Of a stretch of 64,000 nt of DNA, positions 28,715-39,183 are shown in pieces. Each line of letters opens with the position of its first letter. The stretch's first letter is position 1. The notes under the pieces were generated by a model. The model did no database searches. It was not told where the DNA came from and saw only the letters and a list, made by a program, of their open reading frames with translations. The position numbers were made by a program, and so were the translations under genes. Source of the DNA: Oikopleura dioica (taxonomy: Eukaryota; Animalia; Chordata); the NCBI GenBank assembly GCA_907165135.1, contig OU015566.1, positions 12,462,001-12,526,000 on the forward strand, in the 5' to 3' direction.

Positions 28715-29953
28715 CGAACAGTCACTGTTGAAAGTTCCTTCATCGTCCTGCGTGTGGCCTGCTCCATTCTCTTAGCAAATCTTAATTGATCTCTCTCCTC
28801 TCCCTCTCTTTTTTCCACTACAATGTTCTCCTGCAGCGGTTCAATTTGACTCCCACGTGACTGCCAATCTCTCCTTTTTTTAAATAGTTATAATAAGATC
28901 TGTTAGCCCTTCGTCTGGGTCCATTTTCCTTCAGTTGAGAAATCTTCCGTTCTTCAAATATAATAAAAAAACCTCCAAAAGACTTAGAATTTTGAAAGCT
29001 TTCGAAACAAACCCAGTAAGCCTAACTGTATGTGATACCCACAAGTAAGTCGTGTTCGCAAGATTTGTGGCTAATGCAACTTAACTCGTATTTATTTAAT
29101 TTCAATATTTCCTGACGTAGAATTTTTCTAATTTCCAATTGTCAGATATTACCTACACTCGAAAACATTACACGCGCCACGCCCTTATGGCCATTTCTAT
29201 CTTGCCTTGGGGCGAGCAATCGATCCACAAGGTCGATTCAATTCATCGTTAGGTTTTTGCTCATAGGTTTTTCCAAGAAATTGTTACTTTCTTACCATTC
29301 TAGTAATGATTTTTACTATACATTTTTGAAGTTCAAATAAAGAAACGCCCGTCATGTTCATCCCTTCGAGATTCAACCTAAAAACCAAGATGCCAAAAAA
29401 TGCTTGTAAAACTTCCTTAGAGAACAGTTTCCCCTTGCTTCAGTAACTTTTTCCGACTGCCGGAAAAACTAAAATTACTGAAGCAACGTCCTTAATTAAC
29501 AGCGCGTTGACTCTTCATACTTCAATACGAAACAAAAGAAAAAATAAAGTTGAACCCTTTTTGCCTCCCCGCAAGAATATGTGAGCGTGCATCGTCAAAA
29601 AAAAATACCGCGAGACTAAGACCCTCGCGGTAGTCAAATTTCTCGATCCATAAAAAACTGATCTACAAATTCTCTTCCTTGATTCCTGATCGAAATTCTC
29701 TCTAATTGTATACCTGTCTGAGTATTTGTCTCTTTCTCTTAAAATTACTCCTCCAAATTTATAACCTCTATCTATCCTAATGCTAGTGTGTACTATTTTT
29801 AATTCAGTAATATCATCGTATTTTACCCTCCTATTATCTATTTTCGGACGCACCAGACGATGCATCAAAATCAGCGGTTTTCCCTCTTGAATTTTACTTC
29901 ATCAGGAATATTTAATTCTTGTAAAGAGCTTTTCTTTCAATTCCGACACTAGA

Positions 29954-32900
29954 ATGGGGCAGAATGAGGGTCAATTTGGGGCCCTCACTGGCAGCGCACT
30001 CATTTTTAATACTGTTGTCGGAATGGGTATTTGGGCGCTCCCAAAGGTACGACTTTTCAACCCTTTTCCTCCATTCATCCACTTTTTAGATGATTTACGA
30101 AGCAGGGACAGTAGCAGCGTATTCAATTTTGATCTTCTGCGGTTTCATTTCTTTCGTCGTCGCTTCTTTCATCAACGAACTACAAGGGGCAGCAAATGCA
30201 GTCAAGAAAACCAACCTTTCGAAAAGCCCAAAGAAGGTATTGAAAGAAGACGAGGTCAATCTCATTACCCCGGATGATGAGGAGCCGGACAGAATAGGAA
30301 AGGTTGACGAACGCGAAATGCGAAGAACTAGGCACAAATAAGACACTGTCATGATCAAATCATTAGTAATTTTAAGATAAAATAAACCATAACTAGTCAA
30401 TTAAATGATTAATCTGGCCTTCATATAATCAGGATTATCAACAAAGCTGGAATTTCGCGATCAGTTCTTGGGAGTAAATCGGCGCAGTGGTGTAAGTCGC
30501 CAAGAAGAGAAAGTCGGGGTACTCTCACCCGCCGGGTTCAATTCCCGCTGCGAGTAAGAACCTTTCATTACTAGAAGAGGTAATTGGGAGGAACGCATCC
30601 TAAAAGGGGGTATGCTGGGACGAAATATGGCAAACGCCATATTTCCCCCCTTTTATTGTTCACAATAGTGAATCAACTTACGGGAAAAGCTTTTCATGCA
30701 TGGACGATGGGCCACGGAATCACTTAAATTTCCTTAGTCTCAACCTTTCTAAAGACCAAGCCACAATCTACTCCGTCACCGAGCGTTTTGAACTCACCTC
30801 CGCCGTCAAGCTCATACTCGGCGACTGGCCAGCAAAAATCAACAACATCCTCATTATCCTCTCCCTTCAAGTCGCAGTATGCGCATACATCGTCACATTC
30901 GCCGAGACGTTTAGAAACCTTTACTGCCGCCCGCTCACTTGTCAATCTGACAATTTCACTGAAGAAATGGATGACTCTGCGAAAGTCATGTGTGGCGAGA
31001 CGGAATACACCGAGAAATTTATTTATACAATGGCGGTGATTATCATTCTGGCAGTCACAGCACCTTTTTGCGCAATGGGTAGGTCTTTGGAAATGAATAA
31101 ATTAGTAGACATTTTATATAACTGCCATGTGTAATTCATCACGCCTGGCTTCGGAATCCTGTCAACAGGCAAATCATGACTTGATTTAGTAAATTTCGAT
31201 TCATAACTGCGCGTCTGTAAAACCAGGATCTCACTGTATCTTATAAGGTGTGGGGAACAACACATCCGTTCAAATGCTCGGAACGATTTTCCGCTGGATC
31301 ACCATCATCCTCGTTTTGATCATCTCAATCGCGCGCGTTGGCGACTCTGACGCAAAATTCTCGTCCTCGCCGACAAATTGGGTGCGGATGCCGCTGATGT
31401 TTGGCATGGCGAATTCCGCTTTTGGTTGCCACGAAGCGCTACCTTCACTGCTTTTTCCTATCAAGCAAAAACGCAACAATGTGAAAATTCTCGCCGTGAC
31501 ATTTTTGCTCATCGGCTTGCTTTTCATGCTCTTGACGACAACTGCCCTGACAGCTTTTGACGGACCCGATATTGCCGATTTATACCTTCTCAATTTTCAG
31601 GTGAGCTTTTTCAGTTTATTTACAGTTCTGTGGTGTCAATATTTATCACTTCTTCGTACGTCGGTGGCAAGTCGATCTCTTTGCCATCCTCTTTTGGTTC
31701 TATTATATCTCGCGGCAGTGGCGAAGTTGCGTTTCCATAATGAATATATGCACTATCTTCGGTTGCATTCGAAGCTGATCTCTCGATGCTTCCTACTGCC
31801 GTCGCATTTTCATAAGTATAAGCATCATTTACCGCATCATTCTCGGACTGTTGCGATTCGGCATCACTGATGTTTTTCTTCCCACAATTCGTAAGACAGT
31901 CAAACTGATGTGGAATATTTTGCAAATTCGTGTCACATATTTATTTCTTACCATTAGGGCAACAAACAGGAATCCGCCTATTAAAATTAGTAAAACTGAA
32001 ATAAAACCCTCTGCAGCTTCGTTTGTCATTTCTCAACAGTTGAAAACTTCAGTCGAGTCTGAACTTTAGCGCGATTCTTTGATAAATATAAACATGAAGA
32101 GTCGATTTGTGAATAGTAAATCACAAGATTCTGTTTTGCTGATAAAAAAACAGTGGTATCAGATCTTGATATCTACTTTATTTACAGTTCTATGGATTGC
32201 CCATTGATGACTTCTTCGTATGATGGTGGCTGGTCCTCTTTTGGTTGTATGATTTCCAGAGGTATATGACTGTCATAAGCATTGTTTTCTATCGCAATAT
32301 CAGGTTCTGCAGATTCCGGATCTCTATCACTGATTTTCTTTGTGCATTTCTCAGCAAAAAAGCACTTGATGGATGAGATTCTTAGAAACGTATTCATTTA
32401 TTATCAACTTACAAAGAGGACTACAGAACCAATAGCGACAAACAATAGAAGAAGCTTCAATAACAGGACTTTAGTTTCATCGTTCATTTTCTCTTCATTT
32501 GATCTATTAGTAGTGGGTACTCAGAATTTTGGTGCTTTTATTTGGTAAGTATAAACAGAGACGCTTTCAGACCAGTTGCAGTTTGCATTCGCAGATTTCA
32601 ATTTCAAAATCTTCATGTTCCTCGGTCGGTTTCGTTGATAACATCATCATAAGTCGGCGGTAAATCGATAACGGTCTCGTTTTTTACTTTTGCAACTTCT
32701 AAGATGTATTTTGAATAAAGATGTACAAACAGATTCGTTTACCTTCAGAGACAACGGATTCATTTGGAACATATGCATTATTTTCGTAAACAATCTCGAA
32801 CTCCTCTTCTCCGGGATCACAATTTATATGACAAGCTGGCTTGTCAATTATGCTACCGGTATTGTCGCAGACACCACAAAAATAGCACTTTGCGATAATT

Positions 32901-34201
32901 AGTTGAATCGCTCAAACAACTTACAAGTGTCCACACGATAGCGAACGTAGCAGTTACACCGATTATGAGAAAAATTTCTGTATCACTCAAAGAATCTCTA
33001 GTACTTTTTAGTTCTTCCATTTTATATTCAATTTCAGGCAGTCTGCAAAGTTCGATTTTTGGTGATCTTGTTTGCTAAATAGAAACATGGAATTTTCACG
33101 GGAAAAGTTCGTTTTTTTAGCGAAAGTCATGTTTGTTTACAGTAAATAATTTACTGATTAAAAGTCTTCATTCTGGTTTTCTTCCATAACTGCATCATAT
33201 GCCGGTGGTAGGTCATCAATGATTTGAGAGCCTTATTTTTCATCACTTTGTAAACTACGAATGGTACCTTCGGGGACATAAGACCGAGTTTCGGCAGCTG
33301 GTCACTTTGCTGAATATCTCCAGTTGATGTTCTTTGCGATGAATTCCCACTTACAGCCTCGCTGGAGGAAGAACAACCCTCTGACCGACAGAATAAATAC
33401 TTATTTTTTATGGAGTAGTTGAAGAATAAGGCGTTTGGAATCTACCATGAAAAGTAAAGCAAGTGATCCAAAAGTGACGAGCACTCCTATTGCCAATCCG
33501 TCCATCTTTTCTCTTCCAAGTTTCTAACTTTCTTTGGCCAGAATTTAGAGTACAATAGTTTGCCAGGAAGACGATTTACTATCCATAGTAAAGTTAGCAT
33601 TGCTAATTTGCATTTGCAAATTGCAGGAGAATACAGAAATGATTATGTACTTGTTATTACTCATGAGTCAATCATCAAAATACTGAAAATTAAAATGATT
33701 CTCTCAGAACGACTGCGATCTGGTGAAAAGCTCCTTTGTTCGGATGATCCTCACATTTTACCCTATCATTCCAGGTAAGCCAGTTCGCCATAATAATTGA
33801 CTAAAACTCGAACTTCAGCTGTTACGAATTTCATCATTTTCCACGTCGTTTGCCAGCGCAACTTGGAAGTGATGCTTCCCTTGCCAAAAGCTCTCTCCAA
33901 ATCGTCACTCGTGTACCAGAAGATCTTTCTGATGACTCTCTCCAGCATCACTCCTCTCATCATCTCCTTGACAATCACCAATGTCGGACTGATCTTCAGC
34001 GTCGGCGGTGCATTCACGACCATCTTCAGCTCTTTTTTCTTTCCAACGCTGATGGTAATGCGCTCGCGATCGATGCTCGCTGACGTCCCCGTTAAAAATC
34101 CACTTGCAAGTCCGATGCAAAGTAACTTTTGGATCTTTTTGGTATTCTTGACCATCGCAGGGACTGTCGCTGCCAATGCTATTGCCATCTTTTTTCTGTA
34201 G
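29954..34201 (+). CDS. TMEM104-like (Aa_trans / SLC38-related) amino-acid transporter
   Basis: IFNTVVGMGIWALPK..EAG..FISFVVASFINE; CHEALPSLLFPI. Exon ending LYLLNFQ at 31600 splices to 33708 (NDCDL..FYPIIP) and to the final exon ending at 34201. Confidence 0.85.
30464..30561 (+). ncRNA. tRNA-like/Pol III-box structured element in a transporter intron; not a canonical tRNA
   Basis: A-box-like GGCGCAGTGG (30481) and B-box GGTTCAATTCC (30535) with class II tRNA spacing; canonical acceptor and anticodon stems do not form. Confidence 0.4.
31620..32029 (-). CDS. Nested small single-TM protein with PPxY motif, copy 1
   Basis: MTNEAAEGFISVLLILIGGFLFVALM | FDCLTNCGKK..DLPPTYEEVINIDTTEL*. Confidence 0.8.
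32182..32487 (-). CDS. Nested small single-TM protein with PPxY motif, copy 2
   Basis: MNDETKVLLLKLLLLFVAIGSVVLF | CFFAEKC..DQPPSYEEVINGQSIEL*. Confidence 0.8.
32613..33020 (-). CDS. Nested small single-TM protein with PPxY motif, copy 3
   Basis: MEELK..IFLIIGVTATFAIVWTL | CYFCGVC..ENNAYVP.. | ..DLPPTYDDVINETDRGT*. Confidence 0.8.
33158..33505 (-). CDS. Nested small single-TM protein with PPxY motif, copy 4 (last splice unresolved)
   Basis: MDGLAIGVLVTFGSLALLFM | YLFCRSEGC.. | ..DDLPPAYDAVMEENQNEDF*. The most obvious donor is out of phase with the PPxY exon; an alternative phase-1 donor is needed. Confidence 0.6.
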
Positions 34202-34791
34202 TACTTTACCTATTTACATTTACTTCTTACCTTTCAAAATTCATTCAAAGTCTTATTTTTTATCAGAGCAAGATTGGTAAGCTTGGGTGGGGCATAAGTT
34301 TGGGGTTAATCGGGTTTACTCACATATTGGATTTTTCAGCCAATAAATGTTGATAATTTTAGCCTCTGATTGGCTGAAATTCCCCATAGCACACTTATCT
34401 TTCTTTATATATTCGAAAATGTGCCCACCCTAGTTTAAACTCAAGCTCTTTTTTGTTTATACATAAAACTTCTACCACTACTAGCGACTACTTGGGACTA
34501 TCACCAACCCTTTGGCAGTAAAACTCAACTTCTAGCCAATCAAAACTTGCCAGCAAAGGTTTTAGTCCTAGACAGTCACAAAAACAGCAAAGTTCATTCA
34601 ATCTTCAATCATATTTTCTGTTACCAAAAGCAATCAAAAGTCATCTGTATATCTCTTTGTATCCGAAATACGAAAAAACGCTCGCTCATCCTTCTTTTTT
34701 GTTTTATTTAATATTTAACTTCAACAAGAAAATAAACTTTTCAAATTTCGAAAACTTTATAATTTCTTTTTCCAACTGTTTCATTCAAGAG

Positions 34792-36113
34792 ATGAGGGGA
34801 TTCGATTACAGCTTCAGTACAGTAAGCAGTGCACCGATACAGCGCCAGAAAATCCGTCTCACAGCGAACTGTCCATTTCGTATTTCAAAAGTATCGCTGA
34901 TTCCGGATCCACATCCGGACCCGAATGAGGTTGAAATCGTTGTCGGATCGCTGGACGAAGATCTGGCTCAAGTGAGAATTTACAAAAGAACAGCTGATAA
35001 TCAACTCAAAAAAGAATATATTCATGAGCTCGACTCGCCAATTACCGATATCGGATGGGTAAGAATAGCAAAAGAGTCTTGATGTATAAATATGTGGATT
35101 AGATTCAACACAACGCGATGCTAACCGCTCAAGCTAATGGAAAAAGGAAGATGTGGCGTGTAATTGACTCGTACAACAACAGAATGAGTGAAATCTACGA
35201 GTGGGAAGCTGCTACTTCGAGAATTGCAGCGCTCTCGGTCTTTGGTTATGCCTCGATTGGGCAGGATGCGTTCGTTACTGCAACAGAGGTAGCATAATCA
35301 CTTTTTACGAATTTCGTCAATGCTTCTTAGTCTGGAAATATTTGCATTTTCTCGCCTAATGACAAGACTCCGTTGAGGACTTACAAAGATGAATGTGCCG
35401 TGAAAACTTGTGAAGGTATAATCAACCGATTACTGAACCCCTAATGCTTGTTTCTAGCGCTTTCTACCGGACAAATCTTGGCCGGGAACGAATTCGGACA
35501 GGCTAAGATCTTCGATCCTCGAGCAAATACAGTTGATCCAGTTTTGATCTTGGACGTTGGCGAGCCTGCCATAGCGGTGCTCTCGATCGCCCAGCATCCC
35601 GGTAGAACGCATTTGATCTTGGGTGGATGTTCTGATGGAAATTTGACGCTATGGGATGTACGAAAAGGCACTGATGAGCCTCTAGTCGTTGCTCGGCACG
35701 AGGGAGCGATTCTTGATGTAAGTATATACAGTATCTGTACTACAGATGGTTGTTACAGTAGCTTATACAACGCCGGAAGAGGCCTTATCATCAAAATAAC
35801 ATGTGAATTCCAATCTGAAAATTTGCATCCAAAATATAGATATCTTTCAGACCAAATTCCATCCTCATCATTCGATTGCGATGACAGCAGGCTCTGACTC
35901 AAAGATCCTCTTGCAAAACGGACAGTGGGAGCCAGAACAAATACAGCAAGCTGAAGCGAGAGACATGTCCGCAGAAAATACTCTAGAGTAAGTTTCCCCT
36001 TTTCAACTTCTTTCTAAACCTTTTCTAGGGCTATAAACTCGATCTCGATGCAAGGAGACCACTGGGCAGCAGGTGGTGATGATGCCATGTTGATAAGTGA
36101 TATTTTCCGATAA
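34792..36113 (+). CDS. NUP43: WD40 protein, Nup43-like
   Basis: SIAQHPGRTHLILGGCSDGNLTLWDVRKG..RHEGAILD..KFHP matches the Nup43 WD repeats. Confidence 0.75.
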
Positions 36114-36281: not shown

Positions 36282-39183
36282 ATGAGCTGTACGTGCAATA
36301 GACTTTATAAACCGAAGCATCGGCGGCAAGTGGATCGTATTTATCCCAGCGATCCAAAGAATGACAAGCCCATCAGAGCGGAGATGGACAAACTCGTCTA
36401 TTATTCGATGGCGCATCCAGAGAAGCTCGACCGATTAGGGGTCTACCTTTCTGATATTCTGGAAGACGCGATTTATCGGAAACAACAGGGGTGGACGAAA
36501 ATCTCTATTGACGCTATTGAAGCTTTGCTTCGTGCCTGTCAGGCTCCGCAGATCAATCTCTTTGTACAGTCCTACATGGAAATGTGCAGAATGCTGCTAG
36601 AATCAGACTGCACTAAGGCTAGAAAATGGGGAGCGTCGGCTTTCGTTTCATTCTGCGATGTGGATGAAGAGGGCAATCATGAACGGAGCTACGAAGCGTT
36701 TATTGACATCTTTTGCAAGTTCTGCCACGAAGATGGGAAGAATAAGGAGGATGTGAAAACTTTGAGGATTTGTGGAATTCAAGGACTGCAAGGAGTCGTC
36801 AACAAAATGAGCAAGACGAAGATGGGAGAGAGGTTGATCGCGCAAAGTTCGAAAAAAATCATACCCAGCTTGCTTTACAATATGAACGATAGTTTAGGTA
36901 AGACACCCTTTTTATTTCCTTTCTATAAAGTTTATACATTTTAGACGCGGGTCAAACTGGCCCCGGATCCCTCCGATACAAAGCAGAAGAAGTCATTCGC
37001 GAGCTCCTCTCCATCGCTGTTTTGTCGCAAATCGACATCATTGTCAAGCCACTTTTGAAACACTGCGATCATCATCAACTTTGGGAGACTGAAAACTCGA
37101 TCGTTTGGGCGGAATTGTTCATGAAATCTGTCAGATTGAGCTACTCCCACTATATTGTAAAGCTGATCATGGAACATACGGAGCATAAAGACTTTGACTC
37201 TGAAAAAGGTAAACTAACAGCTCTTGTCGTATTTTTTATGATCATTTCAGGGTTGCTGAAAAAACGAGGAATTCTGAACTGCATCTCGCAGATCTCCAAA
37301 ATCCCAAAAGCCTCCACGATGAGTACCATTGCTGGCGAGCTATTACAGTACATTCTTCGCGGGATCGAGAAACACGGGGATCATGAGCAGCTCGTCGATC
37401 AATACACAAGTACCTGTGGCGCCATTATCGGTCATCTTGAAAGCGTCGTTCAAGTGGAGCTTATTCGTTCGATGATTCATGCTCTTCAGAAGGCAAAGAA
37501 GAGGGAAGCTCTTTTGGGAGCAATTCATTACGCGCTTTCCTTCTGCGATGTTTCGCGCCAAAACGAGTACAATATTCAATCGGACATTGTCAACCCGCTC
37601 ATCCACATTACCGCCCCTCTGATGGCCAAATCAACTCCTGAAGAGCGCAAAGCCCTCTCGAAGATCGTCATCTACTGCCTCGATTACAGCAAAAACGCGC
37701 CTGTTCTCAATAGATCTGGATCCTACCACAATCAAGAGGTCCATCTAGCAAAAATGGGAAGTATTCATTTACGTCAAGATGCAGGAGATATCACCGTTTG
37801 GCTACTGGAAAATCTAGCTCAGCCCAAAAACACAACGCAGAACTATCTTCTCTATTACCAGGTAAAATTTATTCTCTGTTCATTCAAGTTGAAAATCTAA
37901 TAAGAATCATTTCTTCGAGGAAAATTTAGTTATCGAATCTTATATAAACTTCAGAATATCCTTGTTTTTCGACATTTATTAATGTTTCATAATAAGATTC
38001 TTATTCAGTATTACTGTTTTCTCCTTTATTTTAACGACTGATTGACGCTGTTTTTAGCTGATGGGTGTCTTGGTATGCGAGCTTGGCGAAGAAATTTTGA
38101 CGCAGATCATCCGTCTCCTTCTAGCTTTCCAGGTAATTTCCGTGCCTAATATCTTATCATCACTTCGATAGTCATAATTTATGATCAGAAATATAATTTC
38201 TGCGCCACTGATCTATAAATATTTTTATATGATTACAATCATTCAATTTTATGGGAGTAGGCTTGTCATAAAAAAGAATCTGACGGTCCAATTAAGACTA
38301 TAAAATATATTTTTAGGATAAGATCACAAGTGCTGATACGCTGCGTCATCAAGCACACGCTTGTGTGGGTGCTACTTTTGCCCTTTTAGCTTCTCTTTTC
38401 GTCGATTTACAGGAGCGGGTTTCTTTTATTTCTCTTCAAAATCATCATGGAATCAAAAATGAACCCAGAGTCAGCCCTTAGTTCTCCCGATCCTTTCCGA
38501 ACGTCGAAATCACCGCCCTCAACTCGCTCCTGAAGCTCTTTTCTCAAGTTCTAGCGACGCATTGAGGCGCTCGACAGCGAATTTATTCGCAGAAGACAAC
38601 TCAGAAAAGTACCTCTTCCGAAGAGCCGATATTTGCTCAAAACTAAAGCATGCTGGTTTCGATACATCCTCGATCAGGTGAGAAAAAACTCAAAGAAGGG
38701 TCCCACTAATGTCTCATTTTCTAGCGACCCTCTTGGCAAAGTCGACCAATTGTCTGTTGATTCATCTGGTCTTTCAGTTTCAAGATCACGCGACCTTGAT
38801 ACTGAATCCATTCATTTAACAGTACAAGATGGTGCTGATGACACACCATTACTGACAGATGGCAACGAAAACACACCTTCTATCAAGGGTCTTCTGGCGC
38901 TGCTAAAAGACGCGCCCAAGGGAAAAGAAGATCGAAAACTCATGCTTCAAAAGGTGACCCCCGTGCCCTTTTTCTTGATTTCACTGACGAGTTCTTTCAG
39001 AAACAAGCAGAGTTACAAAAACTCGACTTCAATCAAGTGGTCGCGCGACTTGAAAAAACGCGGAAACGCGACTCGGAACTCATGCAGCGAATCATGGAGC
39101 ATTCAGAAGCTGCCTCCGAGCGTGGATTCATGCACGATTACAAACCAGCCGACATTGGCTCGCCTCCTTTCTTCATTTACTAG
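36282..39183 (+). CDS. EFR3: EFR3 (PI4KA plasma-membrane scaffold)
   Basis: N-terminal Cys cluster MSCTC; RQVDRIYP; MDKLVYYSMAHPEKLDRLGVYL; LLRACQAPQINLFVQSY; last exon ends ..PPFFIY* at 39183. Confidence 0.93.

Follow-up and report, generated by a model that had tools for sequence, protein, structure and literature searches.

Melan-A, which to our knowledge is known only from vertebrate pigment cells, is a protein of about 100-120 residues with no signal peptide, one transmembrane (TM) helix near the N-terminus, cysteines adjoining that helix and, near the C-terminus, a PPxY (PY) motif with a hydrophobic residue three positions after the tyrosine (Y+3). The adaptors LAT, NTAL, PAG, LIME and PRR7 consist of a tiny ectodomain, one TM helix, a juxtamembrane cysteine pair and a disordered tail that bears tyrosines. 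Melan-A is a substrate of NEDD4 and ITCH, which ubiquitylate it, and is delivered to lysosomes. WBP1L (OPAL1), a TM adaptor that carries palmitate, uses [L/P]PxY motifs to bind and activate ligases of the NEDD4 family and lowers a receptor. In IFITM3, one tyrosine is common to a NEDD4-binding PPNY and an AP-2-binding YEML (YxxPhi), under the control of phosphorylation by Fyn. Here we describe a locus of the chordate Oikopleura dioica at which an Aa_trans-family transporter gene has a single long intron and, within it on the opposite strand, four small genes (g1-g4) predicted to encode single-pass proteins with a C-terminal PPxY. The locus lies in a stretch of 64,000 nucleotides (nt), hereafter the window, that spans positions 12,462,001 to 12,526,000 of the forward strand of contig OU015566.1 (assembly GCA_907165135.1); positions given without a contig name are counted from the first letter of the window.

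Nested genes are common in the compact O. dioica genome, and intron-nested genes together with chimeric gene models are recognised weak points of its annotations. The window comes from chr1 of the Okinawan assembly OKI2018_I69, which comprises 64.3 Mbp in 19 scaffolds, with a median intron length of 49 bp and 11% non-canonical introns.

Four nested genes for small single-pass proteins

We regard the four genes as real and as confirmed at the level of the DNA sequence: they are paralogues, lie antisense within the only long intron of their host, and each encodes a small predicted single-pass protein in which a PPxY is conserved near the C-terminus. An earlier description made from the letters of the window, which we call the sequence-only reading, had listed four head-to-tail genes of the same architecture, antisense in a 2.1-kb transporter intron, each with a very short N-terminus, one TM helix, a phase-0 intron right after the helix, juxtamembrane cysteines and a C-terminal (L/Q)PPxY(E/D)xV, with NxAY-like tyrosine motifs in three copies and high divergence in the rest of the sequence. 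All of these features were re-derived here from gene coordinates obtained by script from the minus-strand reading, with exons joined for lengths, hydropathy, paralogue alignment, substitution counts and counts of N-x-S/T glycosylation sequons (Table 1).

Exon 1 of g1, g2, g3 and g4 measures 60, 96, 75 and 78 nt, each divisible by three, and encodes an acidic N-terminal flank of 3, 15, 6 and 8 residues, respectively, followed by a single hydrophobic helix (best 19-residue Kyte-Doolittle mean 2.16-2.85). Directly after the helix, all four genes have a GT-AG intron in phase 0, its length (37-48 nt) matching the genome median, and every copy encodes two to five cysteines at +1 to +9 past the helix. 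A second intron is present in g1 and g2 only, which corrects the sequence-only reading. The second donor of g1 (TCG/gtctta) is weak, yet it is the sole GT donor in the phase required for the PPAY exon. Consecutive units are separated by stop-to-ATG spacers of 137, 125 and 152 nt. The signal AATAAA overlaps the stop codon in g3 and g4 (31620-31615 in g4) and lies about 70 nt downstream in g2, and none was found after the stop of g1.

All four tails are acidic and carry [LQ]PPxY[ED]xV[IM] 11-12 residues before the stop, in the forms LPPAYDAV (g1), LPPTYDDV (g2), QPPSYEEV (g3) and LPPTYEEV (g4). An xxAY motif occurs once each in g2 and g3, as ENNAY, and twice in g4, as NDAY and DSAY, and is absent from g1; the total number of tyrosines per protein is two to five. 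A degenerate DNA pattern for PPxY[DE]xV[IM] has six matches in the 64.3-Mb genome, four of them within this 2.1 kb, and the reversed control pattern has none genome-wide.

The motif stands out against strong divergence. Between paralogues the proportion of synonymous differences (pS) is saturated at 0.69-0.82 and that of nonsynonymous differences (pN) is 0.35-0.58, the latter values being somewhat flattered because the alignment was made at the protein level. In the alignment columns that never vary (D, P, P, Y and V), the copies use differing synonymous codons. The closest pair, g3 and g4, has 37 of 85 residues identical, with a 59-nt block at the 3' end that is 76% identical. The four copies are old tandem duplicates whose motifs have been kept despite saturated synonymous change.

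The host transporter and its long intron

The sequence-only reading made the nesting depend on the existence of the host junction 31600>33708. We find good splice sites at this junction (CAG/GTGAGC at 31600/31601 and CTCTCAG/AAC at 33707/33708), phase 0 on both sides and colinearity of the flanking exons with the Aa_trans profile. As a working transporter requires both halves, we infer with good support that the junction is real. Between the two profile matches 56 Aa_trans positions are missing; for these the mini-exon at 33708-33774, together with the opening 40 residues of the exon at 33819-34201, supplies 62 residues, so that the host protein, which we take to resemble TMEM104, appears complete with nothing extra.

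A mere 19 nt separate the stop codon of g4, with its overlapping AATAAA, from the donor site of the host (31600-31622), and the 3' end of the g4 mRNA would therefore run up to or into the host exon on the opposite strand. A functional tie between the four genes and the transporter, on which the sequence-only reading had speculated, was not found in the sequence data examined. An Rfam scan of 29000-36000 gave no match. The genes neighbouring the host are listed at the foot of Table 1.

Table 1. Positions of the nested genes, their host and neighbouring features in the window (gene coordinates are given exon by exon in the direction of transcription)
Feature	Position	Strand	Details
g1, 82 residues	33505-33446 / 33399-33285 / 33231-33158	-	introns 46 and 53 nt; Cys24, Cys29; tail motif DLPPAYDAVMEE
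g2, 108 residues	33020-32925 / 32887-32743 / 32698-32613	-	introns 37 and 44 nt; five cysteines after the TM helix; ENNAY; tail motif DLPPTYDDVINE
g3, 85 residues	32487-32413 / 32364-32182	-	intron 48 nt; Cys26, Cys32; ENNAY; tail motif DQPPSYEEVING
g4, 120 residues	32029-31952 / 31904-31620	-	intron 47 nt; Cys29, Cys33; duplicated xxAYxxYxNAT unit; tail motif DLPPTYEEVINI
PPxY[ED]xV codons	g4 31647-31667; g3 32209-32229; g2 32640-32660; g1 33188-33208	-
Upstream open reading frame at g3	32465-32487	-	four codons (ATG AAG AGA AAA TGA), end overlapping the g3 ATG
Host exon 5' of the long intron	31250-31600	+	ends in phase 0, ...LYLLNFQ; Aa_trans E 2.8e-5, profile positions 154-266
Host long intron	31601-33707	+	donor GTGAGC, acceptor CTCTCAG; all four coding sequences on the opposite strand
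Host mini-exon 3' of the long intron	33708-33774	+	22 codons, begins NDCDLV...; followed by a 44-nt intron
Next host exon	33819-34201	+	Pfam Aa_trans positions 323-406, from exon residue 41 on
Neighbouring gene, WD40-repeat exon	35448-35897	+	weak Pfam matches
Neighbouring gene, N-terminus of EFR3 homologue	36282-36944	+	EFR3_ARM, E 1e-28

Public annotation of the locus

The sequence-only reading had called the family unannotated, which is true of g4 and some single exons but not of the remainder. The predicted g3 protein is identical, residue for residue, to the public protein P0004 (OKI2018_I69.chr1.g3407), an independent model built with RNA sequencing hints. A second public model, g3408 (P0001, CAG5107608.1), joins exon 1 of g1 to exons 2-3 of g2, which form residues 21-96 of P0001, and thereby skips the g1 tail and the g2 TM exon. 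These skipped exons are missing from public protein sets, as is g4: a word search with g4 exon 2 came back blank and an exhaustive profile search listed no g4-like protein, g4 itself scoring 79 bits against the tail profile. The family is half-annotated, in the form of unnamed hypothetical proteins. We suspect that the gene predictor was led to the g3408 chimera by the shortness of the first g2 intron (37 nt) and the weakness of the second g1 donor. The public annotation needs correction at this locus, where it has two models, one of them chimeric, for four genes and lacks g4, and these errors fit the known difficulty with intron-nested, tightly packed genes in O. dioica.

Relatives within and beyond the genome

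Profile searching had been suggested in the sequence-only reading as a way to find more members of the family. No paralogue was detectable elsewhere in the genome, as both single-exon and profile searches matched the locus alone. Among 1.84 billion representative proteins the tail profile matched only P0001, P0002 and the bacterial repeat protein P0003, the last of which was rejected as a relative because it is a repeat-summed false positive without any single matching stretch. Individual exons and the public full-length proteins P0001 and P0004 were also used as Pfam queries, and no family scored above its cut-off for any of them. A search of Joint Genome Institute (JGI) metagenomes with P0004 gave 597 pattern matches, none of which was confirmed.

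A word search with g3 exon 2 had just two matches, g3407 (the public counterpart of g3) and a fragment from ENA (P0002). P0002 is a 74-residue open reading frame on a short ENA contig, 85% identical to the corresponding frame of g3; as it begins inside the intron, it represents genomic DNA and is not evidence of expression. Compared with g3 it has an in-frame insertion of three codons within NN-AY and eight substitutions, seven of which fall in the linker adjoining the insertion, and both the cysteine region and the last 17 residues are unchanged. A disordered tail in which short motifs are under constraint would be expected to vary in this way.

The two matches to the motif pattern outside the locus were set aside. 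One (L010, C5:8312807-8313144, + strand) is a gene for a protein of about 96 residues that is broadly similar in layout, with an acidic N-terminus of 6 residues, one TM helix followed by a basic RIKK, a 59-nt intron, and PPSYDEVM at 16 residues from the stop codon. This gene was rejected as a member of the family, having no cysteines, a phase-1 intron 10 residues past the helix and no profile match, and is probably an independent PY-motif membrane protein. The other (L005, C2:4776578-4776874, - strand) belongs to a larger gene beginning MSGAYPDVSPPSYEDVM..., with an N-terminal PPxY plus YxxPhi (PPSYEDVM) and, in the next exon, two hydrophobic helices. This layout recalls IFITM3, but assignment to CD225 was not confirmed, the only match being a weak one to DUF4190 at 15.5 bits.

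Proposed function and its alternatives

We favour, at about even confidence and by analogy with Melan-A and WBP1L, the reading that the four proteins are orphans with a PY motif that act in endosomal sorting, either as adaptors of Nedd4-type ligases or as their cargo. Exon 1 would supply the helix, and the rest of each gene an acidic, probably disordered tail with short linear motifs. The topology is most likely type III, with the N-terminus outside, the tail in the cytosol and no cleaved signal peptide. Within the tail, the membrane-proximal cysteine pair is a candidate site of S-acylation, the xxAY tyrosine motif occupies a central position in three of the four copies, and [LQ]PPxY[ED]xV[IM] would combine on one tyrosine a class-I ligand of WW domains (PPxY) and a YxxPhi sorting signal. 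The tail may then bind the WW domains of a Nedd4-type HECT ligase at the membrane, upon which the protein itself or neighbouring membrane proteins would be ubiquitinated and sent to endosomes and lysosomes, and phosphorylation of the shared tyrosine could switch ligase binding or sorting off. We posit this role because possible partners are encoded in the genome, with at least two WW-HECT loci (four WW domains and HECT at C2:4536692-4538756; three WW domains and HECT at C1:10729231-10731799), and because WBP1L, Melan-A and IFITM3 provide precedents.

PPxY is present in all four copies, and its placement in the cytosol is favoured by the charges that flank the helix. The N-terminal flanks are acidic and have few or no lysines and arginines (K/R); within 15 residues of the helix, there are 3 K/R on the N-terminal side versus 8 on the C-terminal side.

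Several observations weigh against this reading. The charge rule is clear for g3 and g4 only and is ambiguous in g1 and g2. The tails contain 8 N-x-S/T sequons where 2.8 are expected from composition-matched shuffles (P about 0.003), four of them in g4, three in g2 and none in g3, with three of the g4 sequons (NAT) in or beside the internally duplicated unit. Such an enrichment challenges the cytosolic placement, as it fits an extracellular, glycosylated tail in which PPxY could not meet WW domains, and it is left unexplained if the tails are cytosolic. The conservation of [ED]xV[IM] is not needed for WW binding and fits recognition by AP-2 or SH2 domains at least as well, and PPxY, at only four residues, is by its presence alone no proof of ligase binding. 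The tail of g1 hinges on a weak donor site. Lastly, the transcripts and proteins of all four genes are predictions from the DNA sequence.

The conserved positions after the tyrosine bear on one rival explanation in particular, under which the four would be phosphotyrosine scaffolds of the LAT/PAG/PRR7 type, that is, palmitoylated short-ectodomain adaptors whose phosphorylated tyrosines bind SH2 or PTB domains, with PPxY in a secondary role. We consider this unlikely as the principal explanation, but it is compatible with the PY-motif adaptor reading and a live rival to it, because the valine at Y+3 and the acidic residues at Y+1 and Y+2 fit AP-2 or SH2 equally. The valine is invariant, and Y[ED][ED]V resembles pYEEI, the optimum of Src-family SH2 domains in vertebrate data. 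The layout is also that of the scaffolds (tiny ectodomain, TM helix, juxtamembrane cysteine pair, two to five tyrosines), xxAY and YxN could provide extra docking sites, the genome has at least 28 SH2-domain matches, and clusters resembling PRR7 and Myc target are found among the ESM Atlas neighbours described below. Yet the two prolines before the tyrosine, which SH2 domains do not require, are invariant in all four diverged copies, a Pfam search at E <= 10 gave no match to LAT, PAG, LIME, SIT or NTAL, and the argument from SH2 specificity draws on vertebrate data.

It is also doubtful, in our view, that the locus does not hold four independent genes but is one transcription unit, such as an operon resolved by spliced-leader (SL) trans-splicing, or allows a TM exon to be cross-spliced to the tail exon of a unit downstream. 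The common strand and short spacers between units would suit this view, as would the public model g3408 with its TM exon from g1 and tail from g2, the want of a canonical AATAAA in g1, and the wide occurrence of operons in O. dioica, where about 9% of long-read operons contain four genes. Moreover, because every TM exon ends and every tail exon starts in phase 0, a given exon 1 would keep the frame when joined to the exon 2 of any unit further on. A mix-and-match locus, in which transcripts reading through several units would pair the TM exon of one with the tail of any other downstream and so yield combinatorial adaptors from one nested array, is conceivable on these grounds but a long shot. 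Against this view, each of the four has its own ATG, TM exon and stop, and g2, g3 and g4 have AATAAA. Chimeric predictions, furthermore, are a known fault of O. dioica annotations, and the short g2 intron and weak g1 donor mentioned above could account for this one.

The sequon enrichment is an argument for a further alternative, which we judge improbable. In it the hydrophobic N-terminus would be a signal peptide or a type-II anchor and the tail extracellular and N-glycosylated, making the products small secreted or surface glycopeptides with the C-terminal motif as an epitope. The hydrophobic segment does begin at residue 4-16, and the cysteine pairs could form disulfides. However, N-flanks that are acidic and nearly free of K/R (MDG in g1, MTNEAAEG in g4) are atypical of signal peptides and type-II anchors, and the hydrophobic stretches, at about 19-23 residues, have the length of a helix and not of a signal-peptide h-region; together with the C-side excess of K/R, these features are why we disfavour an extracellular tail. 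In addition, g3 has no sequon at all, and the sole strongly conserved element is a textbook cytosolic motif.

It is very unlikely that the four are open reading frames in decay or devoid of function, from which no protein under selection is made: although they have no homologue outside the species complex, have diverged very fast among themselves and include a weak donor in g1, all four frames are intact from start to stop with their splice sites despite saturated synonymous divergence, the motif columns are kept with different codons, and the indel that sets the related ENA sequence apart leaves the frame intact.

Comparison with known families

The Pfam and ESM Atlas results given below place the four proteins in the class of small single-pass PY-motif proteins but do not assign them to any one family. 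The sequence-only reading had seen in them an unannotated family of palmitoylated ubiquitin-ligase adaptors. Its view of them as a family of their own stands in so far as no named family was matched, but the kind of protein has already been described in WBP1L and Melan-A, and the earlier interpretation as a whole is partly supported.

WBP1L, whose mechanism that interpretation had proposed for the four, has, as is predicted for them, a very short extracellular part, one TM helix and a cytoplasmic [L/P]PxY. It differs in having a conserved extracellular C*C*CC*CC before the TM helix and three PY motifs, whereas the O. dioica proteins have no cysteine in their N-termini of 3-15 residues and only one PY motif. 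The match of P0004 to the WBP-1 family (PF11669) at 14.7 bits (E 0.051) is below the cut-off of 28.1. A genuine WBP-1 gene is found elsewhere in the genome (L013, C1:11171483-11171728, - strand; 49.3 bits, above the cut-off) and represents the O. dioica counterpart of the WBP1/WBP1L/VOPP1 type.

With IFITM3 the four share the layout of PPxY and YxxPhi on a common tyrosine, here as PPxY[ED]xV, but IFITM3 belongs to the CD225 family, has another membrane topology and carries its motif at the N-terminus, and no homology is implied. The likeness to LAT, NTAL, PAG, LIME and PRR7 lies in the tiny ectodomain, TM helix, cysteines and tyrosine-bearing tail, and a PRR7 cluster is among the ESM Atlas neighbours; these adaptors, except PRR7, rely on SH2 docking rather than PPxY and are vertebrate immune or neuronal genes.

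In the ESM Atlas, which was queried with P0001 and P0004 and where scores below 0.9 count as leads only, the top neighbour of both proteins is an unnamed arthropod cluster of proteins of about 100 residues (0.90-0.91, with 172-179 shared features). MLANA ranks second for both, at the level of a lead (0.87-0.89), and is followed by TMEM52/207, Myc target 1, PRR7/WBP-1 and Comm, so that the named neighbours are small PY proteins with a single TM helix. Commissureless (PF15957) reaches an ESM score of only 0.78 and gave no Pfam match. The predicted local distance difference test (pLDDT) values of the ESM Atlas models are low, at 0.41-0.50, and are consistent with disorder outside the helix.

Melan-A resembles the four O. 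dioica proteins in plan, as they are likewise small and single-pass, with no signal peptide predicted, cysteines by the helix and a near-C-terminal PPxY with a hydrophobic residue at Y+3. The best match of P0001 to a named Pfam family is to the model MLANA (PF14991), colinearly from the helix to the PY motif (positions 26-109 of 117), but at 15.6 bits (E 0.02) versus a gathering cut-off of 27. The same model found no match at E <= 10 in P0004 (g3) or in the g4 and g1 exons, and a scan of the O. dioica genome with it did not match the locus. That scan did reach, at C5:4035328, an exon ending ...EPPKYDELARAETPPPEYSS... (L012, C5:4035334-4035477, + strand), with two PY-like motifs, for which no upstream TM exon was identified with confidence. 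It matches the C-terminus of MLANA at 18.6 bits (E 0.0024), higher than the study locus, and because this unrelated PY-rich tail outscores the locus, the MLANA signal is mostly the motif itself. The Melan-A-like architecture is a matter of layout and not evidence of descent. Separately, these genes could represent a Melan-A relative of pre-vertebrate origin, although this is a remote possibility.

These findings leave current understanding in place, since both single-pass adaptors with PY motifs and nested genes are well known. If the PY-motif adaptor reading is true, O. dioica would possess a rapidly evolving set of its own, made up of minimal membrane adaptors that serve Nedd4-type ligases, and the locus would illustrate compactly, in a natural case, that a TM helix combined with short linear motifs, two or three in number, can amount to a functioning trafficking device. 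Set beside WBP1L and Melan-A, the four genes would add an instance, restricted to one species, to a kind of adaptor that is already known.

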